Shown in pieces: positions 3,001 through 63,053 of a stretch of DNA of 64,000 nucleotides. The stretch is from Paragordius varius (Eukaryota > Animalia > Nematomorpha). The translations under genes and the position numbers were made by a program. The first letter of the stretch is position 1. Every line of letters starts with the position of its first letter. Below the pieces are notes generated by a model. That model was not told the DNA's origin. It made no database searches and saw only the letters and a program-made list of their open reading frames with translations. The stretch lies in NCBI GenBank assembly GCA_964247055.1, contig OZ176054.1, positions 13,082,001 through 13,146,000 on the forward strand, given 5' to 3'.

Positions 3001-4641
3001 TAAGTAAATTAAACGTTCAAATAATATAAAACCAAAAAATAGCCACAAAAATAAAAATTATAAAAAATATTTTTCCTAAAATTCCAATAAAAACTAACCT
3101 TCGGCGACAATCTGTTCATTTTCTTTAGCGTCCCACCGACGTTCCTGTCTTCGGGCCCCCGAAATTATAATGTAATCTAAATTCTGACATAATAATCATT
3201 GCATAGTATAAAATGATTATAGATGGCATATAATGGTTGCTTATTTCTAGTAGGGGGCAATAAAACAGTAGTGTATGGAAAAAATGAAAAGAAATAATTG
3301 TTTATTCAACATTTTCTTGTTTTTTCCATACACTACTGTGGTGTAAGGAAATTGCCCCCTACTAGAAATAAGCAACCATTAAAATGCATAATCTAGTTTT
3401 TAATTAAATGGCTGACTTAAAAATAATATTTTGGTTGACAAAAATTTTAAAACAAATCAAATCATATATGAGTGATGCAAATTAAAGCATGCAAAACAAA
3501 ATAGCCATTAGATTATTTATAACTAAACGTTGTAAAAACAAATCAAAAATTTTTTATTGTTTCCAATTAACATATCACATCCATCAAGGTACTTTAAAAG
3601 ATTTTTTAACTAAAATTAATTATACAAAGTATATTTTAACATTTATAAATTTAAGCAACCAATCCAATCATTTAACGGAATTGAAACCATAATTTATTTT
3701 GGGTAAGAATTCCCTTGAATAAAACCGTTTTTTCCTAAATTTATAGTAAAACTAAACCCCGACATATTTGATAAAAAATTTTATATCCTAAAGATTTTTT
3801 GAAATTATTTACGAAAAATGAAATGATTATAAAAAAAACTTGTGGATCATTCTTCATTTCAATGCGATTGGGACAAAGATGGCATTTAAAACGGAATCGA
3901 AAGATGGTTGTTGTGTAATACATCCCAATTTTCTTTTTTTCAGAATTGTACCTATTTGAAAAATTAATTTTTTTAATAAAAACCTAATTTAAAGCAATTT
4001 TATAATATCTATAATATTTAACTTAGACCTATCATATTTTAAATTATATAATATGCAGTTGAATTAAAACTTATTTTGAATATAAAAATATAAACAACTT
4101 ATCGATTTTAATTCCTAAATAATGAATATAGAGAATTAAATTGGTAGCACATTCATTTACAATTTCCTAATCGTAATCACAACTAAAACAGATAATAAAG
4201 AAATATGAGTTCAAAAAAAAAATTTATTTGGGAAAAATTAACATTTTTATGTATTGTCTATAAATTAATCTTTCTTATAACTCAAAATGTCTAATAACAA
4301 TTTTAAACTATTTTAATGTCAAATATATAACTTTAAACAAATTTTTAAAACATAACAGATAAGTATAATACCTGACACCCATTCCAATATGATTCCCACA
4401 TCCATTGCACCAAATGTTATAAGGCATCTCAAACCTTATAATTGTAGTTCCTTCCCCAATTTTTCGCATCCTTTCTCGTAAAGGATGACTTTTATGATAA
4501 CCATTTATGCTTCCATGTTTCTCAGGATCAAAGTCTGGAGGAATCCATTTATTTTGAGCTTTACGTTCAGCCTAAACCATACAAATGATATTAGAATAAG
4601 TTTTGTTAAATAAAAGTGAAAAGAGTTTTAAAACTTACCAT
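1..4641 (-). CDS. YJU2B: Splicing factor YJU2B/CCDC130 (CWC16 family), 3'-partial
   Basis: Minus-strand exons 4639-4641 (ATG only), 4372-4571, 3840-3951, 3099-3183, 1163-1338, <1-103 join in frame with GT-AG ends: MAERKAQNKWIPPDFDPEKHGSINGYHKSHPLRERMRKIGEGTTIIRFEMPYNIWCNGCGNHIGMGVRYNSEKKKIGMYYTTTIFRFRFKCHLCPNRIEMKNDPQNLDYIIISGARRQERRWD... The two CxxC zinc pairs and the RFEMPYNIWC motif are diagnostic. Confidence 0.93.
543..833. mobile_element. Tc1/mariner-type MITE (CAGT family), degenerate copy
   Basis: CAGTAAAAATT..TATACGGACAAA left arm; TTTGTCCGTATA..ACTG|TA right arm. Confidence 0.7.
1020..1175. repeat. ~70-85 bp tandem duplication overlapping the YJU2B exon 5 donor
   Basis: ACCC(A)GAAA(A)CAC..AAATACATTT.TAGGGTAAATTTTTGTAAAAAAAC occurs twice; AAAAAACTCTAAGAATATT (1071) copies AAAAAACCCTAAGAATATT (1156). 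Confidence 0.75.
1340..2700. repeat. Degenerate tandem array in YJU2B intron 4
   Basis: About a dozen TTACTGTGAATTGTCAGAATTTTAG-type units; a near-identical ~218-bp higher-order duplication at ~2258-2475 / 2476-2692. Confidence 0.85.
3231..3381. repeat. Compound hairpin / small MITE in a YJU2B intron
   Basis: Perfect 31-bp outer inverted repeat TAATGGTTGCTTATTTCTAGTAGGGGGCAAT (3231-3261 / 3351-3381) enclosing a second ~20-bp inverted repeat ACAGTAGTGTATGGAAAAAA. Confidence 0.85.
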
Positions 4642-4876
4642 AGAATGGTGTCGAAATGGAAATAATTCTTATATATTGGTTAATGAATGCGTGGTAAAAT
4701 TTTCTTACGATGCGTATGATCCCATTTACTGATATTGAATCGGTCAAAAGTTATAATGAATTTCAAATCTACTAACATTAATCCCCCAAACTTTTCCAAC
4801 TTTATTGGTGCATCTTTGCCTAGTCTTATGAATAATTTAGGAGGTTTTTTTGCATTTTTGATTAGTAGGTTTTAAT
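4642..4876. promoter_or_regulatory. Putative bidirectional promoter between YJU2B and intersectin
   Basis: Only 235 bp separate the divergent start codons (CAT 4639-4641; ATG 4877). No specific motif identified. Confidence 0.6.
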
Positions 4877-6672
4877 ATGGCTCCAAACGAAAGCGATAAA
4901 AAAAAATGGGAAAATTATTTTAATCAACTTGCCCCTGTGAATGGCTATGTTACTGGTGCATCGGCTAGAAACTTTTTTCTTAAATCAGGACTTTCCACCC
5001 CAGTTTTAGCTAATATATGGTTTAATTTTATATATTATGTGTTTTTAGGGACATGGCCGATTTAGATAAAGATGGCAAGTTAAATCAAAATGAGTTTTTT
5101 ATTGCCATGCACCTGATAAATCAAAACCTTAAATCATCCATATCCAATCCTCAACTCTTATCTATATCCACATCAAACATTACAAAGTTTAATTACTTTT
5201 TTTTATAACAATCTTAGTTTTAACAAAATTTCAGAACATACCCCTGGAGGGACAAACATTAGTTTACAGACGACTAATAATGACTCAAAATGGGCCATTC
5301 CATCCGCTTTAAGACAAAAATTTGAGTTAGAATTCAAAGGACATGATTTGCATAATTCGGGTTTCTTAACTGGCCCGCAAGCTAGAAATATTTTACTTCA
5401 AAGTCAATTACCTCAAAATATTTTGGCACAAATTTGGTATAGTTTACAAATTTCTTGTTAATTTTATCATTAATTGAAAATATGTAATTATTGAAAGTTT
5501 AAATAGTTTTGGTTTATTTGACAACACGACTCCATCTAAAGAGTTAAGAATTTTTATAAACGAACCCATATATATATATATATATATATATCCTTTTTAT
5601 ATTTTTAACAATTATAATTTTATTTTAATGGATTTTGTTGAGATTTCATTGTTTGCAATGTTTAAAATCTTGAATACTTAGAAAATCTTAAAATGAAAAA
5701 AAGTTTAAGTTTTATATATACCATTTGCACTTCAAGAGTGTTCTTGAACACTTCAAGTTGGTCCTTGAACATTTCAAGTTGGTCCTTGAACAGTTCAAGT
5801 TGGTCCTAGAACACTTCAAGTTGGTCCTTGAACAATTCAAGTTGGTCCTTGAACATTTCAAGTTGGTTCTTGAACATTTCAAGTTGGTCCTTGAACAGTT
5901 CAAGTTGGTCCTAGAACACTTCAAGTTGGTCCTTGAACAGTTCAAGTTGGTCCTAGAACACTTTAAGTTGGTCCTTAAAATTTATAAAGTTTGAAATAAC
6001 CATAATTTTTTATATTATTTATTAACCCAATTTTCTTTATTTATTAAATATTTAATCATTTAAAAATAATTTTTTTTATTGAAAAACCACTTTTTTGTTT
6101 CAAACTACTTTTTTTCAATTGAACAAAATTATTAACCTTTTAAATGCTTTTAATGAAAAATTTTAATTAATAACCCAGAAAATTTATATATTTTTTATTT
6201 CGTATTAAAATCTTATAAATATCCAAAATTATTTTAAGAAATTAATAAAGTTATACGGTTTTTCAAAGATTAAAAGTTGATATTGATATAAAATTTATGT
6301 TAAATAATAGAAAATAGGTTAAAAACAATAAAATAGATTAATTATTTACGATTTTATTGATAAAAGTTAAAAACAAAACAAAAAAGTCAAAGGACCAACT
6401 TGAACTGTTCAAAGACCAACTTGAATTGTTCAAGGACCAACTTGAAGTGTTCAAGGACCAACTAGAAATGTTCAAGGACACAGTGCAAATGGTATATTAA
6501 CAATCATTTATTTTGATGCCCCTAATTTTCGATATAATCTTGGAGATTACCGTTATAAATTTTTAATCAAGGGATTTAATTTAAAATACTTTATGTTCCC
6601 TAACCGTTTATCAGTTATAAAACTAGAAATTAACAATTTAAAAATATGTATCCTACTTATTTATTAAGCCAA

Positions 6673-6721
<49 letters not shown>

Positions 6722-9700
6722 AGATGTATTGATTATTTTATTTTTAACATATTTTTTTAGAGATATTTTTTTTATATTTATTAGTATGGTAAAGCCTCTA
6801 TTTACGGGTCAATTTAAATATCATTTTTTCATTACGTTTAATATAATAGGTTTTAAGGGGTATATTTATTTTTTATAGCCTCTTTAAATCATTTGTGAGT
6901 TGGCTTTTTCAATTTTTTATTAAATCCGCCTTCCACCATTAACAGTTTAAATTAACCCTTTGCCCTTGAACAAATCAAATCATCCTCAAACAATTCAAAT
7001 TCACCCTAAAATAAATTATGCGTGTTTTAAGATAAATAAATGCATATATATATGTTATATTTTAAAAAATATTCGTTTAAAATTCGTATATACTGAAATA
7101 ATAAATTATGCCATAAGAATATATTTCTTATTAATTGTTGAGTTATATTAACCCGAAAACACATAATTTATTTTTAGGGTGAATTTTGAACGGTTATATA
7201 TATATATATATGCCTCATTTAAAAACTAATATTTATCTTAATAATTTTTACTTGCTTGCTTGTTCATTGCCCGCTTTCTTCATATTTATTTTCCTAGAAA
7301 ATATTTGTTTAAGAAATGTAATTTAACTAAGATTCCGTTAAATTTTGACATTCTTTTGAAATCTCTCACGGGCGCGGGTGAAATATTTCATTGGGAGTTA
7401 TTTTTATAAAACGACATCTATTTTATACATTTTTTCTTTTGAAGGGCCCTTTCTGACATTGACGCGGATGGGAAATTAACGTGTGAAGAATTCATCCTAG
7501 CAAGCTATTTAACACATCAACTAAAGTCTGGTCTACTCAGCGTTTTACCTCAAAGCCTTCCGAATGAGCTAATACCCCCCTCTTTTAAAAATAAAATGCC
7601 ACCACCATCTTTTTCTATGTCAGAAAACAAAAACTCTTTAGTAACAGTTTTATCCCCTACAAAAATGTCAAATTCTGAGCTTGGTCCCGATGAATTATCT
7701 AATAATACAGCTTTTAAACCAGGTTAATATATCATTTATGTTTTTTAGATTTATAAAAAATTTCAATTATAAATATCAATTTTTTAACATTTTTTGTATT
7801 CTCTATAAGTGGAAGGGGGAGGGACATGGAATATTAACTTAATTTACAGTAAAAATTGGAATTATACGGACAAAGTATAAAAATATAAAGACAAATACTT
7901 ATTTTTTAAAAAAACCATACTTTTTTAATTTCTATAACATACAACTCATTGTTTCAAATTGCCATTTATAAAATTGATATTTATATTGATGATACGATCA
8001 ATTCTATATATATAACGATTGTAAAATAGCTTATGTTGATAAAATTAAGGTTTGAAAAGGTATGATTGTCTTTTGAAAAAAATATTTGTCTTTATATTTT
8101 TACGTTTTGTCCGTATAATTTCAGTTTTTACTGTATTTTGCATTCACATATATGTAATTACAGGGTTTTTACTATTACATTAGTGACTGACCACCTAATC
8201 TCAAATAACAGATATTAGTTTCTCAAATTATAACTTTTTAAATACATCTATTATAATCAAAAAATATTGGAAAATTAAAGGTTTTTACCGTCTTTGAAAA
8301 ATTTTGTATTGCAATTTTGTATATTATAATATTTTTTTTGTAAAAAACCAATTTTTCTTACTTTTTACTTTTTTTGGTGTGCGTATAGTTTCCTTTGAAG
8401 ATAAAAGGCGCGAAAATTTTGACCGCGGTGCCGCCATTTTGGAACAAAAGCGCGCCGCTCTTCTAAAAGCAGAAGCTGACGAGCGGGCTAATCGAGAACG
8501 GAAGGAATTTGCCCAACAAGAACAAAAACGCTTACAGAGGTGGTATAATTTTTTAGAAAATCAGAAAATTTTTTGGTGGAAAGGCGCCATCTCCTTATAA
8601 GTTATAAATCAGGAAGGATTATTATCCAAATTTTTTTTTATTGTTAAATATTTTTAATCAAATTTTTGAATATGAAAATTTTCTCTAATTGTTAAAAATT
8701 AGATTTTTAAAATTACTATAACAATGAAAAAACTATGTCAGATTCATATTAATAAGTTGAGTTAGTTATAAAAACTCATAAGAATTTCAAATGTTTGAGG
8801 GTGGTTCTTTATGAATTTTTGGTTTAAAAGGTATATTTGCCCTATATAATATACCATATTTTTGTGTGGGTTATTTAATACAGAAATTTTTTTATTCGCT
8901 TTCAAAAAATTTAAAAATATAAATCCTTTTTAAATATATCACTTGGTAATATAAAATATTATTAGATTAACATTTCTGAATATACCATTTACATTTCAAA
9001 TCGACATTAAAATAAATTATGCGTTTTCGGGCAGCTAATATAACTCATCATTAATATGAAATATATATCTTTATAGCGCATAGTTTATTATTTTTTCAGT
9101 ATTATTTTAATTAAAAAACAAAATTTTATTCTTAAAAATATTAAAAATATATGTAATTTTTAATCTTAAAAATACATTAATTTATTTAAGGGGGAATTTG
9201 AATTGTTGGAGGGTGAATTTGAATTGTTTAAGGGTGATGTATTTTAATTGTAAATGGTATATTAATCGAAAACTAACATATTTAGGGCAAATTCTCTATT
9301 ATTTCATAAAAATTAGAATTTAACTTGAGATATGCCTTGTTTTAAAAATATATTTTTAATATGCAATTTTATATATTTATTCCATATTATTTTATTACGA
9401 TTAATTATTTTTATTAATTTTTTTAATTGCTATAAAATTAGATTAGAACAAGAAAAGATGAAAGAAATTGAACGTCAAGAAGCGACTGAACGACAAAAGG
9501 AATCACAAATTAAACTTGATATGGAAAAAATTAAGGCAATGCAAATTAAGGAGGTTTTATTATAAAAATTAAGTTTTTAATTTAATTTTATAAAAATTTA
9601 TAAAAAAAAAATTTATAACAATATTTATTTATTTATTTATCAAGTCGGTTTTTACAATCTATAAATGTTTGATCCAAATTTTATGCATTTTAGGGTTAGG

Positions 9701-12700
9701 ATCTAAGAAAGAGGGTTTTTTCAAATAAATTTATTATTATGCATTATCATTTTAGTTAAAATAGTGTTTTTACCGTTTTTTGCATAGTTGTAGCGCAATT
9801 TTATATCTTAAACAAAAATATTTAAATATTTTATAGCATTTTTTATAATAATTTTAAGATCCCTTGATTTTAGTAAAAAATGACTTTTTAATGGCAAATT
9901 TTTACTTTTTAGCTAATATATATGTATATATATATATATATGTACAGTAAAAATTCAAATTAAACGGACAAAATGTAAAAATATAGGGACAAAACTTTTT
10001 TTTCAAAAGACAACCATACTTTTGTAAACCTTAATTTTTCCCATATATAAGCTATTTAATTACAATTGTAGAATATGTAATTGATTTTTTGCCATTTAAA
10101 ACAATGTGTTATATTGAAATTAATTAAGATTTAAAAAGTATGGGGTTGTCTTTTAGAAAAAAATATTTGTCTTTATATTTTTACGTTTTATCCGTATAAT
10201 TTTAATTATTACTGAATTGAAAAAATGTAAAAGGATATTCCGTAAATAGTAAAAGAATTTTTATGTTACAATTCAATTTAAAAATAAAAGATACCATTTT
10301 AAAGACTTTAAAAGCCCATAAAGATAAGGTGTTGTAAGATTTAGAAATTTCAATTTACTTTTTCAAAAATTTTAGAAAAAAATTATAATCAATCCTAAAT
10401 TATAATAGCTAAATAAGTTTTTTTTGCAAAAACTATGTTTAAGATCTCTAAATTTCAATAAAAATTAATTTATAATTTGAAATTTTAATTTTACTCTATA
10501 ATTAGATAATATATATTTAGGCATCCCGTATAGAACTAGAAAAAAAAGCCAAGGAGGATATGATTGAAAAACGTATCTCAGAATTAAAGTATTTGGAAAA
10601 ACAGCAAACTATGAATTATTCCCTACTTGTGACGCGCGAAAAGGATTTAGATTGCGATTTGCAAAATATGGTAAATTTTTTTATCGTTTTTTAGATTTTT
10701 TTAAATGAAATTTACCCTTTTTTTGTTTAAAAACCAACTATTTTAACCTTTTTTTTAAAAAAAAAGAATTATTAATTCAATTTTCTTTTCTGCATATGTA
10801 ATCTCTAGATATGTCAAAAAGTTATTAAGCCAATTTTTATCAAATTATACAGTAATAGTGAAATTATACGGACAAAACGTAAAAATATATGGATAAATTT
10901 TTTTTCTAAAAGACAACCCCATACTTTTTAAATCTTAATTTTTTATGATTATGAATTATTATTCTAAATTTGTAAGCATGAAATTGTGTGTCTATTGGTG
11001 ACACAATTAATTTTATATTTTCCAGGCGTAATTAATTATTTTATATAAGAAAAACTATGGGTTAAAAAAATATGTTTATTTTTAATTAAAAAATATTTTT
11101 GTCCTTATATTTTTACGTTTTTTCCTTATAAATGATAATTAGTGATTTGTTATTTTTTTAAGGTTTCTTTGTGTTTTCTCATGTTTTTACAAAAAAGTTA
11201 GATACTGGGTATTTCAGAAAAAATTTTACTACACAAAAAAGAGTTTTGTTTAAAAAACGCGGGAATTTTTAGAAAATCATATAATCTATAATGATTTTAT
11301 ACAAAAAGTCAGATGTTTTATTGGGTATATTTAAAAAAATTTACGCAAAAAAAGTTAATTATTTTTTAAAAACGCTGGAGTTCTCAGTAAATTATATAAT
11401 CTATAATGATCGATTTTGATTTCGATTTTAAAATATAAATATAAAAACTAAAAAACTTTTTTTTGCTATTTTGTCTGATAGAACGAAAAAATTTTGAATA
11501 TGCAATTAACATTGCAAGAAACGCAAACACTAGCTGGCAAATATCGTGACACGAATCGAGAACAAGTCAACGCTATGGGAGCTATTGAACTACGGATAGC
11601 TAAGCAGACTCATGAAATTCAAGTTTTTACTCGATATTTTGATATTTACAATTCAAAACCCTTGAACAATTCAAATTCACCCTTGAACAATTCAAATTCA
11701 CCCTTGAACAATTCAATTTCACCCTTAAACAATTCAAATTCACCCTTGAACAATTCAAATTCACCCACCCTTGAACAATTCAAATTCACCCACCCTTGAA
11801 CAATTCAAATTCACCCTTGAACAATTCAAATTCACCCACCCTTGAACAATTCAAATTCACCCTCAAATAAAATATATGTTTTTTAAGATTAAAAATTACC
11901 AATATTGTTATATATATATATGTAAAAAATAAAAATTTTGTTTTAAATTAAACTAATACTGAAAAAATAATAAACTTTAATAATGAGTTATATTAGTTCG
12001 AAAATACATAATTATTTTTGGGGTGAATTTGAATTGCTCAAGGGTGAATTTGAACTGTAAATGGTATATATCGTGGGATATTTAAAGGAATTTAAGGGTT
12101 ATTTTCTAAAATTTTAAGTTTAGAAATGAATGTGTTTGTGATATAATTAGAGGTATTTTTAGAAATCCGGTTATTTTACAAAAAAAGTATCATTTTAAAC
12201 CGTTTTTTAAACTTTTTACTGGTTTTAGAGTTTATTTTTTATTTTTTTTTCCAATGATAGTGTTTGTTTAGTTTCTTTTTTTAGAAAAAGAGATATTAGA
12301 TTTAATTATTTGATGATTTGCTAATTTTTATTTTATGATTCAACTAGGATTTAGATTCGAAATATGCCGCTTTACTCAACGAAAAAATGCGCCTTAAAGA
12401 TGTATTGGCATCATATGGTTTTGGTAATTATATTTTTATACACTTACTTTTAAAATTGATATTATACGGACAAAACGTAAAAATATAAAGACAAATATTT
12501 TTTTCTAAAAGATAATTGTAAAATATAAAATTGATTGTGTTAGTATTATATATCTCTATTTCACACTTTGCCAATCAAAACAATAAGATATATTTACAAA
12601 AATAAAGATTAAAAAGTATGGCTGTCTTTAGAAAAAAATATTTGTCTTTATATTTTTACGTTTTATCCGTATAATTACATTTTTATTTTTACTTTTTTTA

Positions 12701-15700
12701 CAATTAATTTATAATTTATTATAATTAGGTTCCAAAGAAAATTTATTAGATGATACAGATGTTTTGACTCCCCCCTTAAATTTTGGGCAAAATAATCTTG
12801 AAACTGCCCAAAAACATCTGATCTTACAAAAATCAATCGAGGATTTAAAGGAAAAAGTTGCTACACTCTCAAACAAAAAATTAAAAGTTTATATTTTACA
12901 GTTAACTCTAGATTTTTTATAGAAAACAGTAAAAACTCTTAAAAAATATAAAGACAACCATATTTTTTGTTCGAAAAGACAACCAACTACCATACTTTTA
13001 AATTTTGATTTTTTATAAATATAACTCATTATTTAATATTGCATAGTTTGAAAATAGAGATGTATATTACTCAGACAATCAATTCTATATTTTACAAACG
13101 TAATTAATTAGCTTTATATAGGAAAAATTAAGTGTTAAAAAAAGTATGGTGGGTTGTCTTTTAATAATATTTGCCTTATAAATTTACTTTTTGTCCGTGT
13201 AATTTTAATTTTTACTGTACTTTTTTTAACCTTCCTTGATATTTTTTGAACAATTAAATATATTAAATTTGTGAAATATATAATTGAGAATATTATCGAT
13301 TCCATTTTTATTATGTGTTTTTTATTTCATATGATGAGTTTTATCAAACAAATAGGGGTAAAAATTATATTTTTTTTGTATTTATTTTTCTTTATAAGAT
13401 TATTTTTTTATAATTATTTTTTACATTTTATATATAGTTGACAAAAATCTTAAATGGTGTGGAAAAAACTGGGTATAAATTTATATATATATTTAATCTT
13501 TTTTTAAGGATAAAATTTAATTTTTTATATTTTAATTATACAGTGCAAATAACTCTAACAATACCCAAAAACTGGATGATGAAACCACAATTAATAGTAT
13601 ATAAATTTAATTTCTTTTTAAATTTTTTTTTAATTTGGACCCTAGAATTTTAAAAAAATAAGTCAAATATTTAAATTTTTCAATCTTTAAAATATTGTAA
13701 GATTGCTAATTTTTTAATATTTTTAACAATTAATAATATATATATTAGCAAAAAAATGTGGTTATTAATTTATTTTAAAAAATTTGAAATTTTAATTTTT
13801 GGTAATTTAATTGAATAAAATTAATAAAACTTTTTATCATCATAATAGAATTACAAAACGAATTTAATCGGAGACTTGAATTGAATGATTCCCCCAAACA
13901 TTCCTACACCATGAAAAATCAATCATCAACAATAAAAACTATGGAAAATGATAAAAATTTTATTGCTTCAAAAGATGGTATAATTCATTTACCCTTGAAC
14001 AATTTAAATTCACCCTATTATGAAATATGTGTGTTTTGATATTAAAAATTACCTATTTTTAACATTTTAAAACAATGAAATTTGTTTAAATCTAACATAA
14101 TACTGAAAAAAATTATAAACTTAGTCATAATATTTTCATATTAATAATGATGGGTTTTATTAGTGCCCGAAAACAAATAATTTATTTTTAAGGTGAAAAA
14201 TTTGAATTGTTCAAGGGTGAATTTGAACTGTGAATGCTATAAAATTTTATTTAAAATGTTTTTTTATTTATTTTCCATTAAAAAAATATTTTTATCATAA
14301 TTATAATGATAGTATAATAAAAAATATCATAATTTTAAAAATATAACAACATTTTTAAATGCAACATTGTAATACATGACAAAACCTTATATATGTCACT
14401 ATTAGGAGTGAAATGTTTCTAATTTATTTACGTTTTCTTTCAATAACAATTGTAAGTAAGCCTTATAATTAATTAATTTTTTGGCTATTAAGATATATAT
14501 AATATAGATTTTAAATATTAAATTTTATTTAAGAATCAAGTTTTTTTAAAAATATTATATCCTGATTTTTTTATGGAATATAGGTGACAAAAATCAAGGA
14601 AATAATGCGACAAATCTGATAGCTTATAAAGCCACATATGATTTCAAGGGTCGAACACCTGATGAGCTTAGTTTTAAGGCTGGTGATATTATTATGGTAT
14701 ATTCTTGATTAATAATTAAATAAATAAATTTTATAAATTCTTGATTAATTATAAATTTTTTTGAATATTTTTTTAAATTATACGGACAGAATTTAACAAC
14801 TAAGCAAAAAATATAGATATATTTATAAAAAGCTACTATATGCCCTTTTAAACTTAATTTTTTTTAAAAATTATAATTGAAAACGATATATAGTAAAAAT
14901 TGTAATTTTACGGACAAAATGTAAAAAACGTAAAGACAAATATTTTTTTCAAAAGACAACCCCATACTTTTTAAATCTTGATTTTTAAAATTTGAATGAT
15001 TGTTAAAAATTGCATAGTGTGAAATAGAGTGTATATTGGTAATACAATCAATTTAAATATTTTACTATTGTAATAAATCATTTATATCGAAAAAATTTAT
15101 GTTTAAAAAATATTGAGTTGTCTTTTAGAAAAAATAATTTGTCTTTATATTTTTACATTTTGTCCGTTGTATAATTCCACTTTTTACTGTAAATTGGTAC
15201 ACACTCATTATAATTTATAATTAAAATCCAATCAATAGTTTATATCGGAAAAATTCAGGTTTAAAAATGTATGGTTGTCTTTTATAAGAAATTATTTGTC
15301 TTTATATTTTTACATTTTGTCCGTATAATTTCATTTTTACTCTAAATTGGTAATACACTTAATATAATTTATAAATCCATTCAATAGTTTATATCAGAAA
15401 AGGTAGATTTAAATAATATGGTTCTTTTATAAAAAATATTTGTCTTTATATTTTTACGTTTTGTCCGTATAATTTCAATTTTACTGCAAATTTATAACTA
15501 AGACGCTTAATATAATTTACAAATCCATTCAATAGTTTATATGGGAAAAATTAAGGTTTAAAAAATATGGTTGTATTTTAAGAAAAAAATTGTCTTTATG
15601 TTTTTTGTCCGTATAATATCAATTTTTACTGTAAATTGGTAACACATCTTAATATAATTTACTATTGAAATCCATTCAATAGTTTATATCGGAAAAATTT

Positions 15701-40491: not shown

Positions 40492-40541
<50 letters not shown>

Positions 40542-41867: not shown

Positions 41868-41912
<45 letters not shown>

Positions 41913-45129: not shown

Positions 45130-45130
<1 letters not shown>

Positions 45131-45189: not shown

Positions 45190-45195
<6 letters not shown>

Positions 45196-45298
45196 GAGAT
45201 GATATTTTTATGTATGATTGTGGTTTGTGAAATTAAAGAAAGAGATAAATAAGTAAGCACATCCTTCTTTTTTGATTTGGATTTAATTTTTTTCTTAT

Positions 45299-47637: not shown

Positions 47638-47877
47638 CCATTTTAATTTTAAATCTCAAACAATTCAAATTCCCCCTTGAACACGAATTACCCTAAAAAT
47701 AAGTTATGTATGGGATAATATAACTCATCATTTATAATATATTTTTACGACATATTTTTTTATTTTTTCGGCATTAATTTTTAACATATAATATTATTAA
47801 ATAAAGGTAATTTTCTATTAAAAAACACATAATTTAGGGTAAATTTGAGTTTAAGGGTGAATTTGAAGTATAAATGG
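47638..47877. mobile_element. CCATTTAC-subfamily element
   Basis: CCATTTT ... GGGTGAATTTGAAGTATAAATGG|TA; shared interior. Confidence 0.7.
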
Positions 47878-47981
47878 TATATATATGGTATATATCTTGA
47901 CCTGATAAATGGGCTTGTCCTTAGCCTAAACGCAAAAAAGCCAAGATTGCGCGATAAATAAATATATATATACACTGTAGG

Positions 47982-48867: not shown

Positions 48868-49038
48868 ATCCTTAATTATCCTTAATCACTTTTTGCCCGA
48901 TTTCGATTTTCTCCCAATATTTCAAAAACTAGGTTATCAACAAATAAAAATTTTCCGGCAAATGAATACGCTGGTCATAAGCTATCTCATGAAAAAAAAT
49001 TTTTCGTTAAAATTTTTTTTGCATATCTGCCAGATTAA

Positions 49039-51809: not shown

Positions 51810-54800
51810 ATGGTTATATTAATTGATTCTGGCGTTAATAACCCAATAAATTCAGCTTTACAGCAAAAATTTAACAAGCCATGTAAATTGGAGCGTCAGC
51901 TGAAAAATTCCTTAATTCAATCTATCCTTGATTCCGACATTGATTTTGTGCTAAGCAAAGAACAATATTCTAATTCGTTACAAAAATTAAAGTTTTATCA
52001 CTTTCTTAATATCCATTTTAGGAGCAAATATGCATCCCTTCCCAATTTGAAAAATAGTGCCATATGTTCAACTTCTCAGTCGTGCATGAATATCCAAAGT
52101 TTTTAATTATTTTTAACATTATGCAAATTTTTGACTAATTGCAAATTGGATATAATTATTTGTAAATTTTATTAAGACAATGCCTAAAATTAAATATTTG
52201 TAATAAATGATAATTAACGCTATTTTGGCTAAAATATTTTTATTAAATATTAAAAGTATATTGTATTATAAAAAAGCTTCTTGTAGAATTTTAAGTTAAT
52301 GATTAAAAAGGTTTAAAAGCCGAATGACAGCTAATTTATAATTATCAAAATATAACTCTCAAAATATAGTTAAAACCACTGTCAATTTAATAAATCTTAT
52401 TTTTTAAATATTTTTTTATATGACGGTTAAAAACTGTATTCATTTTTTTAGATAAACATTTGTATATGCGCCTAAAAGCCTAGTGAATCCATAATTTAAA
52501 AACTTTAATAATATCCTGGATTATTTGTTGATTATTTATACACACACATATTATTTACGATTCAATTTTACCCTTAAACAATTCAAAATCACAAATAAAA
52601 TTTTGTTTTAAATTAAAATTATACTGAAAAAATAATAAACCATGCCATAAAGATAGATACCTTTTATATTAATAATGAGTTATATCACTTCGAAAACACA
52701 TTATTTATTTTCAGGGTGAATTTGAATTGTTCGAAGGTGAATTTGAATTGTTCGAGGGTGAATTTGAATGGTTCGAGGGAAATTTGAAATGTTTAAGGGT
52801 GAATTTGAAATGTAAATGGTATATATATATATATATATATATGACATTGCCCAAAACTCAATAATAATTTACTTAACCTAATTTATAATATCCTCTAAAG
52901 TCTCATTAAAAAATTGAAATAAATAATTCATGTTTTAGGTACATCTAACGGAACAATCACATCTACCACTAATCATCCACACTTTAATAATGTTGCCAAG
53001 AATTCTAATTCTCAAAATTCTGCAAATTCAAATGATGGAATCCCTCAACCCGCTTATATTATATTCCCTTCAGAACAAGTTGAAATGTCCTGGTCACCTG
53101 GTGTTTTTGGAGGAGGGCAAAATAATTTCTCCCCTGTTGGTTCAGGCCTGGCTAATTTGGGTAACACGTGTTACCTTAACAGTACACTCCAATGCTTGAC
53201 TTATACGCCACCTTTGGCAAATTATTTTGTCAAACAGACGACGACATCAACGGCCCAAAACCATGCACAGAAATGTATGATTTTATTTGTAATTTAAAGA
53301 TTTTAAGATTAAATAGTTTTTTTTATAAAAAAAACTTTTTATAAGTCGGGGTTTGAATAATAAATGACCAGATAACTGCATTTAATATTAATATTATATT
53401 TTGGGTAATGTACTGGAGAATTATTAAAATTGATGATTATTTACTGCATTTTTTTATTGAGAATAATTGTCAATTTTTACATTTTTACACCCCATGAATG
53501 GTCTATGTTTTTTTAGCTGCTAATCAGAATCTAATTCCAAAAACTTATTATGCAAAAAGTTTTATATTACCGAACGATTTTGAGAAAATGTCTTTTGTTT
53601 CATTTTTATGCACCGACAAGTTTAGGACTGATTTAAAAATCATAGAAACATTGATTGAATGGTTCTGGTATTTTTCTATGAATATAACCATTTTCTATGT
53701 GCGGTTTATTTTTACAAATAGTTAAATTCCAAGATTATATATTTGTTGGTAAAATATTTTTAAAAACTTTTTAAAATGATCAAACTAAAACATTTCAATA
53801 TTTTTTGTTTCTTATATTGATCAAAAAATATATCAGGTCACATCCAGGGATTTTGTGCGGAATGCGAGATTGGGAAACACATAAAATTGGCTCTTTCACG
53901 TGCCTATCAAATCTACAAACCACTCAATATTGTCCAAAATTTGAAATGTAAATATTCATTAGAAAAACAATTTTTACAGCATCAATCACCTAAATTAATT
54001 TTGAGAAGATTTTATTGATAAAATATTGAATATACAAATCCGTTTTAACCTATTGATTAGTTAGCTACCTTTTTTGGAATCCAAATTTATTTTAAACGAA
54101 ATATTAAAAAATAAATTGCGATAAAAATTAGTTTATGTTAATCAATATTCTAATTTTTTTAATTTATTTAAAGTTGCATGTGCCTTTTATATTTCAAAAC
54201 TAAAGTATTTTAATGGTAAAAAATTTATCTTTTATAGTAATACTTATTCACAAAGTTTAATTTTTTATGTAAAAATAAAATTGAATGAATAAAACCCTAA
54301 AAACTTTTTTATTAACATCATTATTCTCCCCCAGTAAAAAAATTTATATTTATATATATAAATTTCTTAGGTATTGCTAAGCATTTTACACCCTATCGCC
54401 AAGAAGATGCCCACGAATTTTTCTTACACATTCTAGAAGCTATGCAAAAGAGTGGTCTTAATAGATTCAACAATAACTCTAAATTAGATCGATTTAGTAA
54501 GCATACAACACTCGTGCATCAAATCTTTGGCGGGTATCTCAGGAGTCGAGGTTTAGAAATTTTAGTTAATTCTCTGAGAAAATAGTTTTGATCAAATAAT
54601 TTTTTTATAACTAAATTTGGGTTTTTTATCTATATTTATATATATATATTGGTTTGGTTTTTCTTTAGTGACAGTTTAAAATCTTTGGCGGGTATCTTAG
54701 CAGGTTTAACAACTTTTATATGAAATTTTATTTATTTCTCTGAGAGAATAGTTTTGGTTAAATAATTTTTTTTATATTCTAAATACGAATATTTTTACTA

Positions 54801-57187
54801 GATTTATATATTGGTTTGCTTTTTCTTTGCTAAAAATTAAAAATATTTTGTGGTTGCTTTAGGGGTCGAGGTTTATCACTAAACAGAGAAATTTTATTTA
54901 ATTCTCTGAGAGAATAGTTTTTATTAAATAATTTTTTTATAGCTAAATATGGATTTTTTTACATTTATATATTTTGATTAACTTTTTCTTTAGTAAAAAT
55001 TGAAAATCTTTTGCGGGTTATCTCAGGAGTCGAAGTTTAACAACTTTGTGAAATTTTTTGATAGCTAAAAACGTGGGGATTTTTTAGTTAAATATGGATT
55101 TTTTACATTGGGATAACGGATATTTTTACTAAATTTATATATTGGTTTCTTTAGTGAAAGTTGAAAATCTTTTGCAGCGAGGTTCAACAACTTTTTTGTG
55201 AAATTTTATTATAGCTAAAAACGTGGGGATTTTTTAGTTATATATGGGTTTTTACATTGGGAATACGGATATTTTTTACCAAATTTATATATATTGGTAT
55301 GGTCTTTCTTTGGTAAACGTTTGAAAATCTTTGTTGGTTGCTTCAGGAGTCGAGGTTTTTTTTGAAATTTTATTTTACTTAATTCTCTGAGAGAAAAGTT
55401 TTGATTAAATAATTTTTTTACTATTGAAATAGTATATTAACAAATTTTTTAACTAGTATATCAAATCTTTGGCGGTTATCTCAGGAAGCGAAGTTTAACT
55501 TTTTTAATAAATAGAGAAATTTTATTATAGCTAAAAACGTGGGGATTTTATAGTTAAATATGGGTATTTTATATTAGGAATAATACGGATATTTTTACAT
55601 TTATCATATTTTGGTTTGGTTTTTCTTTGGTAAACGTTTGATATCTTTGTTGATTGCTTCAGGAATTGATGTTTAACTGTTTGAAATTTAATTCTCTGAG
55701 AGAATAGTTTTGATCATATAATTTTTTTATAGCTAAATATGGATATTACTAAATTTATATAAGAGAATAGTTTTGATCATATAATTTTTTTATAGCTAAA
55801 TATGGATATTACTAAATTTATATAAGAGAATAGTTTTGATCATATAATTTTTTTATAGCTAAATTTGGGTTTTTTACCTATATTTATATATTGGTTTGCT
55901 TTTTCTTTAGTTAACGGTTAAAAGTCTTTGGCGGGTATCTCAGGAGTCGAGGTTTATTACTAAACAGAGAAATTTTATTATTTAAAAACTTGGGAATTTA
56001 TTATAATAAAATATGGGTTTTTACATTGTGAATACGGATATTTTTACTAAATTTATATATATTGGTTTGGTTTTTCTTTATTGAAAATTTAAAATTTTTG
56101 GCGGGTATATTCAGGAGTCGAAAATTTTTTTAATTCCAAAACAAAACTATTATAAAAATTGAAATTATATTTAACAGACAACAATAAAAATATAAAGATA
56201 CAGTCATGGATCCTTTCTAGAAAGTTATTACTTATTGCCAAATAGTATCGTATATAACAAAGAGGAGTATTATGGTTAATTAATTTCACTCATTTTTAGC
56301 CAATAATAATTCTCTTTTCTGCTATTTGGCAATAATTTATAACTTTCTAGCAATATGTTAAAAAAGTTGGGAATGGTAATTCTAATTAATTTAGTAATTT
56401 CCAATTATTTTAAACATTAATTTTAAGTGGAAGGGTTAGTTGTTAGTATATTTATATTATACTTAAACACATTTTTACCAGATAAGATTTTCGACGCCCT
56501 TGCCCCACACTTTTTTTACTTTTTTATTTAATTTGATAATATTGTTAATATCATAGAGCTCTTGGTTTTTTTTATTTTTAACTAATATCTATACTTATAG
56601 GAAAAATAATTTTTGATAAAATATAGGATACATTACTGTAATATTATTTTTTAGGGATCACCATACTTTTTTATGTGATTTAATAGAATATAACTCTTTG
56701 ATTTTAACTGCAAAATAGATTATAGAAATGTTAATTGGTACAGTGATTTATAAATTTTGCTATTGTAATTTAATGGCTTATGTAGCAAAAATTAAGGTTT
56801 AAAAGATATAGTTGCTTTTTGAGAAATAAATGATGTCAATTATACTATTTATCTATATATTCATTTTTACTGTAAATTACGAGAATTTGAATGAAATTTT
56901 ACATATTTCTGCTTTTTATAGCCAAAACTTAGTTGAATTTCAAAAAAATTCTGTTAAAATATATATCAATCTAAATGAAAACATGGTTGTAAATGCCTTT
57001 TTTGAATATTTAATCTAAATAATATTTAATATATACCATTTTTAAATGATGTATATAGTTATTTGTCAAGTGTGTAAAACTCCGAGTGACTGTTATGATC
57101 CCTACCTCGATATCAGTTTGGATGTCAAAGTAACCTCCATATTATATATTTATAATTTTTTTACGTTTCAGTTTTGAACAAAGTCAG

Positions 57188-57226
<39 letters not shown>

Positions 57227-60200
57227 TGGAATTATACTATGGACAAAACGTAAAAATATATGGACAAATATTATATTCCAAAAGACAACTCTATTTTTTT
57301 AAAACCTTAATTAATCTTGATTGTGTTACCAATTTACATTTCTATATTATACTTTTTTAGTTTAAAACAATGAGTGATATTTAACACTTGGATACAACAC
57401 ACTCATTTTAGTCCTTCGATTCAAATTGGGGTAGTTGGATACCCCAGGCCTGTTTAAAATCAAATACTTTAAAGAGTATGGAAGGAATTGAAACCATGAC
57501 AAAATTTTGCACTTATCTAACATTAATAAACCGAAATATATAAAAAATTTTATTCAAAAATAATTGATATTACTTATTTTGAGCTAAAACTAAAAGGTAA
57601 AAATTTAGTCAACGTGACATGTGTCAAATTGTAAAATTAAAAAATAATACAAAATAAACCGCTTTTTCTATTTCTATCAATGCTAAATGTAATTTATATA
57701 AAAAATAAGCTTTATTTTAACCCTTAAAATTAAATGAAGACGATATTTTGCAAAATTTTTGTAAAATAAAATGGCGTCGAAGTAGTTTGAGATGGAACTT
57801 TTTTTTCAAAACAAAATTTTATCAAGATATTTTGGCATATTTATATAATATTTATCAGGATAGAAGCATAAATTTAAATTGGGACCGTTTCCTTCAGTAG
57901 TGTTTTAAAAATTTTAATTTAATCATAGTCTGGGGTATTTAGATACCCCAATTTGAATCGAAGTGTTAAAAAAACATTAAGATTTAAAAAATATGGTTGT
58001 GTTTTAAAAAAAAATATTTGTCTTTATATATTTATATTTTGTCCGTATAATTTCAATTTTACTGTAATATATATATATATATTCAGTCATATTTTATCAT
58101 ATTATTATGCGTTTTAAATTATTGAGTATAACAAAAAATGAGAATGAAAAAAACTACAACTAATTTTTAGATTTTTACGCTGAAAAAAAAAACAATTTAT
58201 TTAAGAAAGTCATACAATACTAACTATATACATATGCTTTTTATACTTATCATTCAAATTTCACTTTAATATACAGTTTTATCTCTAATTAAATTTTGTT
58301 AACATTTTATGTCTTTTTCTTTTATTTTGCAGGGTACATTTAACATGCACAATGCCCTCAAAAAATTCACTAGTCCTGAACTTATTCAAAATGAAAATGC
58401 TTACAAGTGTGAAAGGTAATTACAGTTATGTATCCTTTTATTTTATCAAAAATTTATTTTTTCTGGGTATAAATATTTGGTAAAGAATGGACAAAACAAG
58501 TGGTAATTTTTAAACTTTTTTGATGAATATGATAGATATTGTTAATACCATAGAGCTCTTGTTTTTTCCATTCTTTACCAAACTTAAACTAAAAAAAATA
58601 TAAATTTTTGATAAAATAAAAGTTACATCACCGTATAATAAAATTGTATTTAGGTATTTATTTAAGGATAGAGAAATTTATCTAGTTTAATTAAACATTC
58701 TCATAGGTTAATAATTGGAATGCAAATATTATCAGCAAAGTTGTTATATGTCTTATGTTCTGTTTTTTAATTATATTATATAGTGTGCGTGTTTGATTTA
58801 TATAATTAAGTATGCAAATGAATATGGAAAACAATATTTTAATTATGCCATTTACAATTAAAATTCACCCTCAAATTTATGTGTTTTTTAAGCACAAAAA
58901 CTACCTATATTTTATAAAAAATAAAATTTTGTTTTAAATTAAAATAATACTCAAAAAATAATAAACTATGCCATAAAGATATATTTCTTCATATTAATAA
59001 TGAGTTATATTAGTTTAACACATAATTTATTTTTAGGGTGAATTTCGATTGTTCAAGGGTGAATTTGAACTGTAAATGATATATTTTTTGTATATCAAGG
59101 ATAATATCTATAAATTTTTAACCTAATATTTTTTTTTAAAACCGTAACAGTTAGGAATGTATTATATTGAACACAGCACCCTTTTTTTTCCGTTAAGGAA
59201 AAAAATATATATACTCTTTACTGTATAAATATATGCTGCTATTGTCAGTATTCAATAGATTACTATCCTATACTCTATAGTATAAAATGGTAAAAAACTA
59301 AAAATTATACTATATCTTATATGCTTTATTCTTTTCTCACTTCAGTTGTAAACGGATGGTAAGTGCTACAAAGCACGTTAACTTACATCGATTGGCCCGC
59401 GTTAATGTATTCCACCTTAAACGCTTCACCAGTTCTGGCATGGGAAAAATTACGCAATTCTTCCAATACCCCGAAACGATTGATCTCGCCCCCTACCTCA
59501 GTAGCTCTACAGCTGTTGTTGGAAATCATAAAGTTCCTTTAAACAATACAAACGCAAATGTTGCTACAACATACAGTTTATATGCTGTTTTAGTTCATTC
59601 AGGTTCCTCAACCAAATTTGGTCATTACTTTTGCTTCTGTAAGGCACAGAATGGATCCTGGTATCGACTTGATGATGCTAATGTAAGATATTAAGGTTTT
59701 TGGGTTTTTGCTGATTAAAGAATTTTCGATTGGGTTTCTTTTGGGTTTTTTGATTGAAAAAAATGCATTATTATACAATAAATTTTGGGTTTTGCTGATT
59801 AGAAAAATGCATTATTATGAAGTAAATTTTGGGTTTTTAGATTTCCTAGATATCGAAAATTTTACACTTTTTAAGATAAGATTAGATTACCTTTGAAGGA
59901 TACAAATTAACCCTAAAAGTGAATTGTGTTAAGCTTTAAGTATATAAATATCTAATTGGTTCTAAAATATTTGCTAAATTTTCTTATTTTCCAGTTTTTT
60001 ATCTGATTTGCATTAGGAGATTTTTAGAATGAGTATTAATAATTTAAATTACTCGCTTTGTATAAATTATTAACTCTAGATAAAGATATCAAAATTTTTT
60101 AATTAGGTATCAATAATTATACGGACTATGTATTTTTTAGGTAACACCAACTTCCTTACAAAAAGTATTGAGCCAAGAAGCCTACCTCCTATTTTATATA

Positions 60201-62870
60201 CAGGATACTAAGGTTTGATAGTTTTTCAAAAATTGTTTTAAAAAAATGCTTATTTGATAAAAAACAGCCCAATACAGAAAAATTTGAAAAAGTTGTACAC
60301 TGAAAACTAAAATTTTACGGATAAAACGTAAAAATATAAAAACATATATTTTTTTCTCATATAATTGATTTATTTACCATTATAAAATATATAATTGATT
60401 GTCTTATTAATATACATTTCTATTTTATACTTTGATGTTTAAAACAATGAGATATATTTATAAAAATTAAGATTTAAAAAGTATGGTTGTCTTTTAAAAA
60501 AACACATGTCTTTCTTTATATTTTTACGTTTTGTCCGTATAAATCCAAGTTTCTTTGTTTTTAGAGTTTAAGTTTTTCGAATAAGTTTAAGACCGTCGAT
60601 TGTTTCTTTTATGGTTTGCCTTTTTATTTTTACAAAATATTGTAAATTGTATTTTGGGTTGTGCAATATGGAAAGGATTGTTCAAATTTTTTGGGATATA
60701 TAGAAAAATCAAAGAATTTAATATCATACGCTTTGCAAAATTTTACTTTTTCAAAATATGTCACGGTTTTAATTCGAAAAATAAATTTATATGTACTTCG
60801 CATCTATTTTAAACCTCTGCTGTAATATATTTCTTATAATTGAATATTTTATATAGCGAACCACAAACCAAAACATATTTCAAACTATCCCCAATGGTAA
60901 TTTACATTCATCTCCGCCATCATTATGTAACCTCAAACAACAACAGAATTTACCCTCAAAAATGTCCCCAGGTCCAAATTTAAAGTTAGGACTTGTTCAT
61001 AAAAATAGTGGAAACGCAACAAGCGGTAATAGCAATATATATGTCATAAAACCTTCAACCGAACCCAAACAGAATGGGTCAAATAATCTATCTTCTTCTG
61101 TGCATCGATTACAAGAAAAAAGTAGGGAATTATATATGAATATTTAAGGCAGGTAATTTTTTCTGGTAGTTCTTTGCCAATCAAAAGGATTTTTTAAGAA
61201 GATTTGTTCAGGGAAATTATTTTGGGCTTATTTTTGCAAATTGTCAAATATGTATTTATTGGGCAATATTCCTGGCTTTGTGTTGGACACCGCCTGATTT
61301 TAACTTTTTTTCAAAGTTTTTATACATAATTAAGGATAAATAGGCGAGATTACCTACCATCTTTTGTATGCTTTTAATTTTTTAAACCACTTATTGTATA
61401 AAAAAGTGCTTTGTAAAATTCCAAGTTTAAGCCTTTATGCATGGTTAATATGTTTAAAGTTTAGCAATTAACATAACTTAAAGTGGGTAGTTTAGTTTTT
61501 TCCTATATAATTATTCAAGCAGTTATTGTTCCAACAATTTAAGACCACCACCAGTTTTAATACCAAATTCTTAACATGGTGGTATTATTATGTATTTTTC
61601 TATATCTTTTTTTACATTTTCTCGATAGTTATCCTCAAACGGTCAACGGATACACCAAATAGTATTATTCCTAAAAGCAACAATATTAACAATCCCCCCT
61701 TCGTAAACACCTTTAAATTTTTACCCGCCACCAATGCCCAACAAAAACAACAAAACTCCAGATTTGAAAATGGTGACAGAAAAAATTCTGATAAAACCGC
61801 CCCCATTATTTCTGGTGATAAAAAAATTTTGGTTCCCTATGAAGAGTCAGGAACGTCGTCGTCCCATTCTTCTGATTCATCGCCAGAATCAAATTTTTTA
61901 CATTCTAAGAACTGCTCTGATATCAAAAACTTAAATTGTAACTTAAATCATTCTAATAACTCTATAAAGACCAATAAGTTTAGTGAAAATTCTTTTAAAG
62001 ATTCCCAAAACTGTGTTTTAAAAAACGGAGTAGGTAATATCGTGTCTGAGCATGATTTGAATCAAATCCCCCTGCCTTGTGAAAACGCTAACGAAAATAG
62101 CAAAAACGAATTGAAAGATACTCATCAACAGTTTTCACCCATAAAAATTGTGATTAAAAAAGTAAAAGACCCTTTAATTTCTAATGCCAACAATAGCAAT
62201 ACCTTACATAAAATTGTTGCAATCACATCGAATGATCTGCCTTCACAAAACAAAAATGTTAATAAAATTCCTAACAATTATGGACCCGAAATTAACAACA
62301 TTGAAAATACTTCTAAACAATCATCCTTTAAAAACAAATTTATCAATTTGGTGAAGAGTAAAAATCATACCATACATAAAACAAAAACTAACGAATTCTC
62401 ATTTGCTGATAAAAAATTGGCCTCTAATGAAAACATTTTTACCAATTTCAATGAATCCAGTAAGGAAAATAAAATACCGCCTAAAAATAAACTTGATTGC
62501 ACGGATTCGAAATTAAATTTGTCTAGTTCGATCGCATATGTTAATAATACCCCAATGACAAATGGTTCAACGAATTTATTTCAATCTTTTAATGTTGTCT
62601 CACCACACAAAAAACGTAAAAATGGACAGGAAACAGAATTAAATACTATAGAAACAACAAAACATGACAATATTAATTTGTCTCAAAATGAGTTCAATAA
62701 TAGGAAATCCTTGGAAAAACTTAATAAAAAGAAAAAGAAACATAAAAAATTGAAAATGGTGGCAGAAAATAATGCAAGTAAGCTTGACAACACGCCTTCG
62801 CCGATCGCCATCGCAAATACTGCCTCTAAGAGTATAAATATGCCAGAAAACTCATTGGGTTTAAATACAG
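51810..62870 (+). CDS. USP36: Ubiquitin-specific protease USP36/USP42 (scrawny-like), probably 3'-partial
   Basis: Exons 51810-51991, 52022-52098, 52939-53274, 53837-53947, 54371-54550, 57059-57129, 58333-58415, 59346-59682, 60141-60212, 60857-61121, 61629-62870 (donor CAG|GTTTAG; read-through stops at 62881). Cys box [36 protein letters not shown], His box [18 protein letters not shown]; N-terminal LQKLKSKY; long low-complexity C-terminus with [10 protein letters not shown]. Confidence 0.9.
52555..52819. mobile_element. CCATTTAC-subfamily element
   Basis: Right arm has 4 units of the 21-mer and ends TGTAAATGG|TA(TA)n; left end degenerate. Confidence 0.75.
54524..56125 (+). repeat. Tandem array carrying ~9 copies of the USP36 exon 5 3' end and donor
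   Basis: AAATCTTTGGCGGGTATCTCAGGAGTCGAG|GTTT variants near 54680, 54845, 55005, 55165, 55326, 55463, 55640, 55925, 56090; also three ~60-bp GAGAATAGTTTTGATCATATAATTTTTTTATAGCTAAA units at ~55700-55865. Confidence 0.85.
57219..58064. mobile_element. CAGT-family MITE interrupted by piggyBac-type MITE copy A
   Basis: Left arm (GGACAAAACGTAAAAATATA) follows a (TA)n tract; right arm ends TTTTACTG|TA at 58064; the two halves rejoin across the TTAA site. Confidence 0.8.
57385..57965 (+). mobile_element. piggyBac-type MITE, copy A, nested in a CAGT-family MITE
   Basis: TTAA|CACTTGGATACAACACACTCATTTTAGTCCTTCGATTCAAATTGGGGTA ... TACCCCAATTTGAATCGAAGTG|TTAA; 581 bp, no ORF. Confidence 0.88.
58848..59079. 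mobile_element. CCATTTAC-subfamily element
   Basis: CCATTTACAATTAAAATTCACCC ... GGGTGAATTTGAACTGTAAATGA. Confidence 0.75.
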
Positions 62871-63053
62871 GTTTAGTTTAATATATTTTATCCTGAAATT
62901 TCAATTTTTGAAACTGTTATTAGTGTTTTTAAAAACGGCTCTCTTTATTATCTCGGGACTCTGATATACTTAAGAAATCCTGTGAAAGTTGTTTCTTAAC
63001 GTTTATTTTTACTTAAAAGTTAATAAATCAATATTGTAATTTTATTTAATTGA

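Follow-up and report, generated by a model that had tools for sequence, protein, structure and literature searches.

Decay of the intronic 5' splice site consensus in ordinary GT-AG introns of the horsehair worm Paragordius varius

Introduction

The G at +5 ranks with the most conserved positions of animal introns; it is in contact with U1 as well as with U6, and mutations at this site are a cause of human disease. We analyze a 64,000-nucleotide (nt) stretch of the genome of the horsehair worm Paragordius varius (GCA_964247055.1, contig OZ176054.1, positions 13,082,001 to 13,146,000; hereafter the window), which holds six animal genes, an intersectin gene among them, and in which the 5' splice sites (5'SS, or donors) have largely lost the +5 G consensus. 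The window has a guanine-plus-cytosine (GC) content of 24% and lies on a contig (C5) of a 110.5-Mb, 44-contig assembly.

Several described systems are close to this one. Tiny introns are known from the genomes of ciliates and dicyemids. Recognition of AU-rich introns in plants was reportedly described by Goodall and Filipowicz in 1989; plant donors keep a clear +5 G preference. In animals, U-rich elements and TIA-1 (TIA-1/Nam8) assist weak donors. Two classes of U2-type 5'SS have been distinguished by Parker, Simpson, and colleagues, namely AG//GU, read by U5 loop 1, and //GURAG, read by the U6 ACAGA sequence (review, PMC11732430). In Saccharomycotina, a switch at +4 has been associated with the loss of METTL16 and SNRNP27K, and the U1 sequence ACUUACC is invariant across yeasts with changed donor preference (PMC10581693). 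In the searchable portions of the nematomorph literature, genome papers included, we found no description of introns or splice sites, and the accessible part of the genome paper of the horsehair worm Gordionus (10.1101/2023.06.26.546503) mentions neither.

Results

The +5 G consensus is largely lost across the window and a genome-wide sample

The introns studied here are ordinary U2-type GT-AG introns with a decayed intronic donor consensus. Beyond the exonic AG and the GT itself, donor information is confined to +3 (A, less often T) and +6 (T); at +4 and +5, base composition matches that of the intron around them.

Window junctions were placed by GT/GC...AG ends, reading frame, stop codons, and homology, with no donor scoring, so that the calls introduce no bias into base composition from +3 to +8. 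Maximal extension of open reading frames overruns into introns and served only to list candidates; a self-trained codon-usage exon finder was dropped because it was contaminated by an intronic satellite with long open frames. Forty window donors were resolved, 39 GT donors and one belonging to a GC-AG intron. For the genome-wide sample, Pfam profile matches were followed exon by exon in nine CCT/HSP60 genes, eight myosins, and three proteasome genes, where abutting hidden Markov model coordinates fix each intron to within a few residues. Every GT/GC...AG pair that kept the frame, was free of stops, and restored the expected residue count was taken as a candidate. Candidates were obtained for 62 Pfam-anchored introns, with a single best solution in 55. 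Altogether 95 introns were called (92 GT and 3 GC, one of the latter solid and two doubtful), all of which end in AG, and the U12-type donor [AG]TATCCT was found at 0 of the 95.

A first-pass annotation, made from the letters of this DNA, had claimed that the +5 G consensus was largely lost, and the resolved junctions bear this out. A +5 G is present at 6/39 window GT donors, as follows:

18501, + strand, donor GTGAGT
27743, + strand, donor GTTAGT
53275, + strand, donor GTATGA
59683, + strand, donor GTAAGA
29418, - strand, donor GTTTGT
36271, - strand, donor GTAGGT

When window and genome sample are pooled, it is present at 16/92 GT donors (17.4%; 95% confidence interval, 10-27%). For comparison, G stands at +5 of 13.5% of all GTs in the window and makes up 10.6% of intron interiors. 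An upper bound that is independent of the choice among candidates is given by the 15/62 Pfam-anchored introns (24%) that had any admissible +5 G candidate. Relative entropy was 0.02 bits at +4, where A and T each reach 0.42, and 0.06 bits at +5. Information was kept at -2 (A, 0.68), -1 (G, 0.61; A, 0.25), +3 (A, 0.59; T, 0.32; almost no C), and +6 (T, 0.55). GTRAG occurs in 7/92 donors, GTAAGT in 2/92, and an exon-side AG in 35/92, and the full AG and GURAG are both missing from over half of the donors. A test for G at -1 compensating for the loss of G at +5 among these donors was negative (Fisher p = 0.40). The weak donor is present across all intron length classes. The most frequent donor hexamers are GTAATT, GTTTTT, GTAAAT, GTATAT, and GTTTAA; GTTTAA, GTATAT, and GTAAAT, earlier described as typical, are thus among the commonest, and the frequent T at +3 described with them is present in 32% of donors.

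Loss of a consensus can be mimicked by donors that have been misplaced, with the true junctions at nearby canonical GTRAG sites. Called donors do carry a +5 G at a frequency (17%) not far from the one at random GTs (13.5%), as miscalling would give, and the junctions of this species were read from DNA. Among sequencing runs searched, no RNA run contained the window, and runs labeled as this species contained almost none of its sequence words. We nevertheless judge this explanation very improbable. No second GTRAG lies within 30 nt on either side of any of the 40 window donors, and real junctions are therefore not hidden at neighboring canonical sites, which the first-pass annotation had itself named as the observation that would speak against its claim. 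Other GTNNG sequences lie within the same distance of 6/40 window donors, compared with 27% at random positions. A compatible +5 G candidate exists in only 24% of the homology-anchored introns. Furthermore, positions that played no part in calling carry strong signal, which makes the calls credible: acceptor position -3 is a pyrimidine in 88% of introns (T, 70%; C, 18%; G, 1%), and the donor shows marked preferences at -2 and at -1 (G, 61%). The polypyrimidine tract before the acceptor is weak, with slight T enrichment.

Ancient intersectin introns lost the consensus in place

The intersectin gene of the window was delimited by tblastn of intersectin homologues together with junction reading, and 18 of its introns were resolved. 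It and the introns discussed here are as follows:

4877-23348, + strand, intersectin gene: 2 EH domains, a coiled coil, and 5 SH3 domains
5020-5048 (29 nt), + strand, intron with donor GTTTAA, phase 2, within a Trp codon of EH domain 1
5187-5217 (31 nt), + strand, intron with donor GTTTAA
14697-16606, + strand, intron with donor GTATAT, interrupting the first SH3 domain
18501-19434, + strand, intron with donor GTGAGT, phase 1, the sole intersectin donor with +5 G

A +5 G was found at 1/18 intersectin donors, GTGAGT at 18501, compared with the 1 of 23 (GTGAGT) reported before. The best colinear homologue is the intersectin-1-like protein of Gordionus sp. m RMFG-2023, another horsehair worm, with 54-74% identity over whole SH3 exons.

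For the Gordionus protein (P0151), RefSeq (XP_065324264.1) gives the same sequence as the authors' annotation (CAK9290270.1). According to the accessible part of its description, the authors' annotation (GCA_954871325.2; 10.1101/2023.06.26.546503) was made by BRAKER with STAR-aligned RNA sequencing (RNA-seq) data. Mapped at 100% identity onto its locus (L072; OX940783.2:5447412-5470540; GC content, about 27-28%), the protein defines 27 introns, each with exactly one canonical GT-AG solution, and only 2/27 donors (7%) have a +5 G. The same script applied to intersectin of the starfish Acanthaster planci (P0157 on L074) gave a +5 G at 30/40 donors (75%) and an AG/GTAAGT logo, so the method does not lose +5 G where it exists. 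Compared with starfish by Fisher tests, the deficit was significant for the window gene (p = 1e-6), Gordionus (p = 4e-8), and the pooled set (p = 3e-10). A Trichuris control yielded only 4 introns, 2 of them with +5 G.

Exon-by-exon projection of the 18 window junctions onto the Gordionus and starfish proteins showed that 12/18 introns share residue and phase with Gordionus and that 4 of these are also shared with starfish. These introns are therefore ancient, and their intronic consensus decayed in place. At the four sites shared by all three species, the donors, in order, are GTGAGT, GTAAGA, GTACTT, and GTGAGA in starfish (3/4 with +5 G); GTTTAA, GTATAG, GTTAAT, and GTATAT in the window; and GTAAAC, GTAATT, GTATGT, and GTAAAA in Gordionus. 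The 29-nt intron 5020-5048 has as its counterparts a 40-nt GTAAAC intron in Gordionus and a GTGAGT intron in starfish, and the SH3 intron 14697-16606 corresponds to introns with GTAAAA and GTGAGA, respectively. The same comparison argues further against misplaced donors, since the RNA-seq-guided annotation of Gordionus has introns at the sites and in the phases of 12/18 junctions, exact mapping within that annotation gives 2/27, and the identical pipeline returns 75% in starfish.

In Gordionus intersectin, introns 1-7 measure 37-47 nt, and those farther downstream are mostly 0.2-2.2 kb; this run of short 5' introns parallels the one in the window gene. Four window introns (5020, 5187, 17395, and 25261, all + strand) open with the 8-mer GTTTAATT.

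A shared opening of this kind is what one would expect if young transposon-derived introns, such as introners or the ends of miniature inverted-repeat transposable elements with GTTTAA-like donors, dominated the sample. With 12/18 intersectin introns shared with Gordionus and 4 with starfish, including the 29-nt GTTTAA intron at 5020, we regard such an origin as highly unlikely. The GTTTAATT intron at 5020 occupies an ancient position, found in both Gordionus and starfish, and is thus not simply a transposon end.

Splicing RNAs are canonical, and the named protein partners are present

The first-pass annotation had suggested that donor recognition was rewired, with altered U1 or U6 sequence or with loss of or change in U1-C, LUC7, SNRNP27K, or METTL16 among the possible routes. 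By the RNA route, a working U1 or U6 with a changed 5'SS-binding sequence would pair with A or U at +4 and +5. The canonical U1 5' end, ACUUACCUG, was found, and four intact U1 genes fall into two classes, one starting with ACUUACCUGG (L001 and L003) and the other starting with ACUUACUUGG and carrying C9U (L002 and L004). The genes of the C9U class are as follows:

L002:1501-1666, equivalent to C6:606254-606419
L004:1501-1665, equivalent to C6:3718553-3718717

The two classes differ along their full length, with many paired changes within stems, and both have a TATA-like box about 25-30 nt upstream. Judging from these features, the C9U class looks like a maintained paralogue, whose RNA would pair with the A at -1 found in 25% of donors but would be irrelevant to +4 and +5. 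An intact second U1 class with the same TATA-like box as the canonical one, together with about a quarter of donors ending the exon in A, is the evidence in favor of a rewired RNA reader. The altered base contacts the last exon base, however, and not +4/+5. Both classes keep C4, the partner of +5 G, and all four intact copies keep A3-C4-U5-U6. Two identical U6 copies follow the Rfam consensus up to and including the ACAGAGA box, and U5 has the canonical loop 1, GCCUUUUAC. Apart from these genes, only 5'-truncated U1 copies were matched. A change in the RNA readers is accordingly an explanation in which we place very little belief.

In the truncated U1 copies L005-L008 (C6, around 580-634 kb and 3.73 Mb), similarity ends upstream of about nt 20-22, and the sequence beyond is AT-rich.

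U1-C, two LUC7 genes, SNRNP27K, and METTL16 were all found, the last three factors above Pfam cut-offs, so the proposed loss or change of these proteins was not supported at the level tested. The zinc-finger N terminus of U1-C is almost identical to what we take to be the human sequence. Its gene (L065:1501-1637; C7:3651544-3651680) is split by a 23-nt intron with donor GTATAA between the ..THDS and PSVRK.. codons, which are presumably contiguous in human. The SNRNP27K C terminus agrees with human residues 137-155 at 18/19 positions and keeps M141. With canonical U1, U6, and U5 and with the named proteins present, neither changed RNA readers nor loss of those proteins explains the trait.

A subtler protein-level change may still be considered, in which altered factors that proofread or stabilize pairing at +3 to +6 relaxed the requirement and AT drift then erased the consensus. 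Candidates would be LUC7L/L2-type versus L3-type paralogues, PRP8, SNU66, PRP28, or the N6-methyladenosine (m6A) mark placed on U6 by METTL16. Preference between 5'SS classes shifts with LUC7 paralogues, SNRNP27K, and METTL16 in other systems (PMC11732430, PMC10581693). The search turned up only two LUC7 genes (C5:4138111 and C9:2287981), compared with three in humans. On the other hand, U1-C, SNRNP27K (with M141), and METTL16 are present and conserved where inspected, and A and T are equal at +4 (0.42 each), with no clear sign of the +4U switch tied to METTL16/SNRNP27K loss. We therefore consider a protein-level origin unlikely, although it deserves to be kept in mind.

Sequence context that may compensate for the weak donor

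The decoy content of long introns was measured with a donor matrix over -3 to +8. Decoy GTs that scored at least as high as the true donor occurred at 4.8 per kb in long introns, and at least one was present in 59% of these introns; the same measure in the starfish gene gave 1.1 per kb and 33% of introns. At 4.8 decoys per kb, the donor motif is insufficient alone.

Two features of the surrounding sequence set introns apart. T reaches 0.52-0.62 at +6 to +18, compared with 0.42 in intron interiors, and GC content is 20.4% in introns versus 35.7% at exon edges. The first-pass annotation had raised two means of recognition to which these data speak. Reliance on the exon side and U5 fits the preferences for A at -2 (68%) and G at -1 (61%), and definition of introns by AT-rich content fits the GC difference (20% versus 36%) and the T-rich stretch at +6 to +18; both are plausible. 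Most introns are 70-3300 nt long, and a class of 23-34 nt is also present, unusually short for an animal. Six ultra-short window introns allow no alternative join: 5020-5048, 5187-5217, 25162-25190, 25261-25294, 25373-25398, and 29392-29418 (- strand).

Other genes and repeats of the window

Apart from intersectin, the window contains the following genes and donors:

3744-4571, - strand, YJU2B/CCDC130-like splicing factor gene; first intron 3952-4371, donor GTATTA
About 25082-29034, + strand, RRS1-like gene with three ultra-short introns plus further donors
25162-25190 (29 nt), + strand, RRS1-like intron, donor GTAATA
25261-25294 (34 nt), + strand, RRS1-like intron, donor GTTTAA
25373-25398 (26 nt), + strand, RRS1-like intron, donor GTACAT
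25583 GTGACA, 26742 GTAGAA, 27743 GTTAGT (+5 G), and 28231 GTTTTT, + strand, further RRS1-like donors
29134-29589, - strand, UXT/prefoldin-like gene; 27-nt intron 29392-29418, donor GTTTGT (+5 G)
33060-41796, - strand, beta-hexosaminidase gene with seven GT donors and one GC-AG intron
41653 GTATAT, 40081 GTAAAA, 36857 GTATAT, 36271 GTAGGT (+5 G), 35328 GTATAT, 34749 GTTCTT, and 33884 GTATAG, - strand, beta-hexosaminidase donors
33208-33580, - strand, beta-hexosaminidase GC-AG intron, donor GCAAGT
51756-62878, + strand, USP36/42-like deubiquitinase gene with the five donors that follow
53275 GTATGA (+5 G), 53948 GTAAAT, 54551 GTTTAG, 58416 GTAATT, and 59683 GTAAGA (+5 G), + strand, USP36/42-like donors

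The exon order of the beta-hexosaminidase gene was compared with that of human HEXB as we assume it to be, which served as a lead only. In intron 33208-33580 of this gene, GC-AG is the sole frame-compatible join between an exon ending in a Trp codon and the next exon, and the remaining positions of its donor, GCAAGT, match the consensus perfectly. This GC donor with a perfect AAGT hints that U1 pairing counts when the GT is weakened.

One satellite-like tandem-repeat family lies inside introns of several window genes, where it gives rise to spurious long open frames in all six frames. Its copies are as follows, in window coordinates:

5692-5991, 6341-6497, 9111-9320, 11630-11950, and 21042-21880
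27151-27400, 44363-44535, 47555-47693, 52617-52870, and 59013-59117

The segment 63050-63960 has a GC content of 33%, well above that of the remainder, and short open frames on both strands.

Discussion

The trait described here is common to P. varius and Gordionus and affects ancient introns that are still GTRAG in starfish. It arose in place within the lineage, and neither new introns nor changed splicing RNAs are its source. The change in donors put forward by the first-pass annotation is therefore real, and the word rewired overstates it, since orthologous ancient introns lost their intronic consensus in place.

On balance we favor, with somewhat more confidence than doubt, an explanation that joins this decay to the following mechanism. 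Strong AT mutation pressure, combined with relaxed selection on pairing with U1 C4 and with U6 ACAGA, may have let +4 and +5 drift. Contact with U1 would then be minimal, at -2 to +3 and at +6, with U1 nucleotides 9-10 on the exonic AG, and U5 loop 1 would sit on the A-rich exon end. The downstream T-rich stretch and the drop in GC content could be read by U-rich-binding proteins that aid U1 binding, in the manner of plant AU-rich introns and of weak donors dependent on TIA-1. In introns of 23-47 nt, both ends might be paired across the very short intron, as in short-range intron definition.

Several points weigh against this explanation. Pooled +5 G (17%) slightly exceeds the G level of introns (10.6%; p = 0.03), and a residual +5 G preference may thus remain in the donors. 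The genome sample comprises 55 introns from conserved housekeeping families, with 40 more from one window; junctions in this species were derived from frame, stop codons, and homology in DNA and not from RNA; and support from Gordionus comes from one gene. In addition, the roles given to the T-rich stretch and to the contrast in composition are drawn from correlation, and the U-rich-binding factor is hypothetical. Finally, a compensating branch-point consensus (CTAAY, TTAAC, and similar) was not enriched near 3' ends, which leaves part of the needed information unaccounted for.

A bolder and more tentative proposal, which we hold to be possible and rather less than probable, is that horsehair worms as a clade gave up reading +4 and +5 with intact machinery and that donors are picked almost wholly by the exon side, composition, and U-rich context, down to introns of 23 nt. 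A role for the C9U U1 paralogue might lie with the donors that have A at -1, a quarter of the total. If true, these worms would offer a natural animal system for donor choice that is nearly independent of U1/U6 pairing.

The presence of +5 G at background level in ancient introns with machinery that looks intact separates what the spliceosome is capable of from what it usually requires, and gives a natural setting in which to ask how donors can be located when pairing to U1 is limited to about 3-4 base pairs. There is a practical implication as well, as gene prediction in these genomes will put donors in the wrong place if the software was trained on other animals.

A close counterpart of this system is Gordionus montsenyensis (GCA_954871325.2), which shows the same trait in the orthologous gene (2/27 donors with +5 G, introns of 37-47 nt, GC content of 27%). 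It is a separate species, with protein identity of about 40-70% in domains, and its genome is presumably larger (288 Mb, compared with 110 Mb here). Tiny-intron genomes resemble this one in having a 23-34 nt class, but here most introns are 70-3300 nt long and the weak donor is found at all lengths. As in plants with AU-rich introns, introns are far AT-richer than exons and U-rich near splice sites, a T-rich stretch follows the donor, and the motif is insufficient alone; dependence on U-rich-binding proteins, by analogy, is only hypothetical here.

Donor consensus has evolved both here and in Saccharomycotina while U1 ACUUACC stayed invariant. In P. varius, however, METTL16 and SNRNP27K are present, the change is at +5, and the genome is that of an intron-rich animal; at +4, where METTL16/SNRNP27K loss is marked by a preference for U over A, A and T stand at 0.42 each, as in the intron background. 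Compared with U2-type introns at large, the GT (rarely GC) and AG ends, the canonical U1, U6, and U5, and the pyrimidine at acceptor -3 are all in place, and the +5 G, carried by 17% of donors, is not the majority base. Within the two-class framework (PMC11732430), many donors here have an exon-side AG (35/92) and weak intron-side pairing, like the U5 class, and the U1, U5, and U6 sequences show no change, here or in any species studied. In contrast to the plants and animals studied, in which both classes are common, //GURAG is almost gone (7/92). This genome thus looks like an extreme case within that framework, with the U6-ACAGA class nearly gone.

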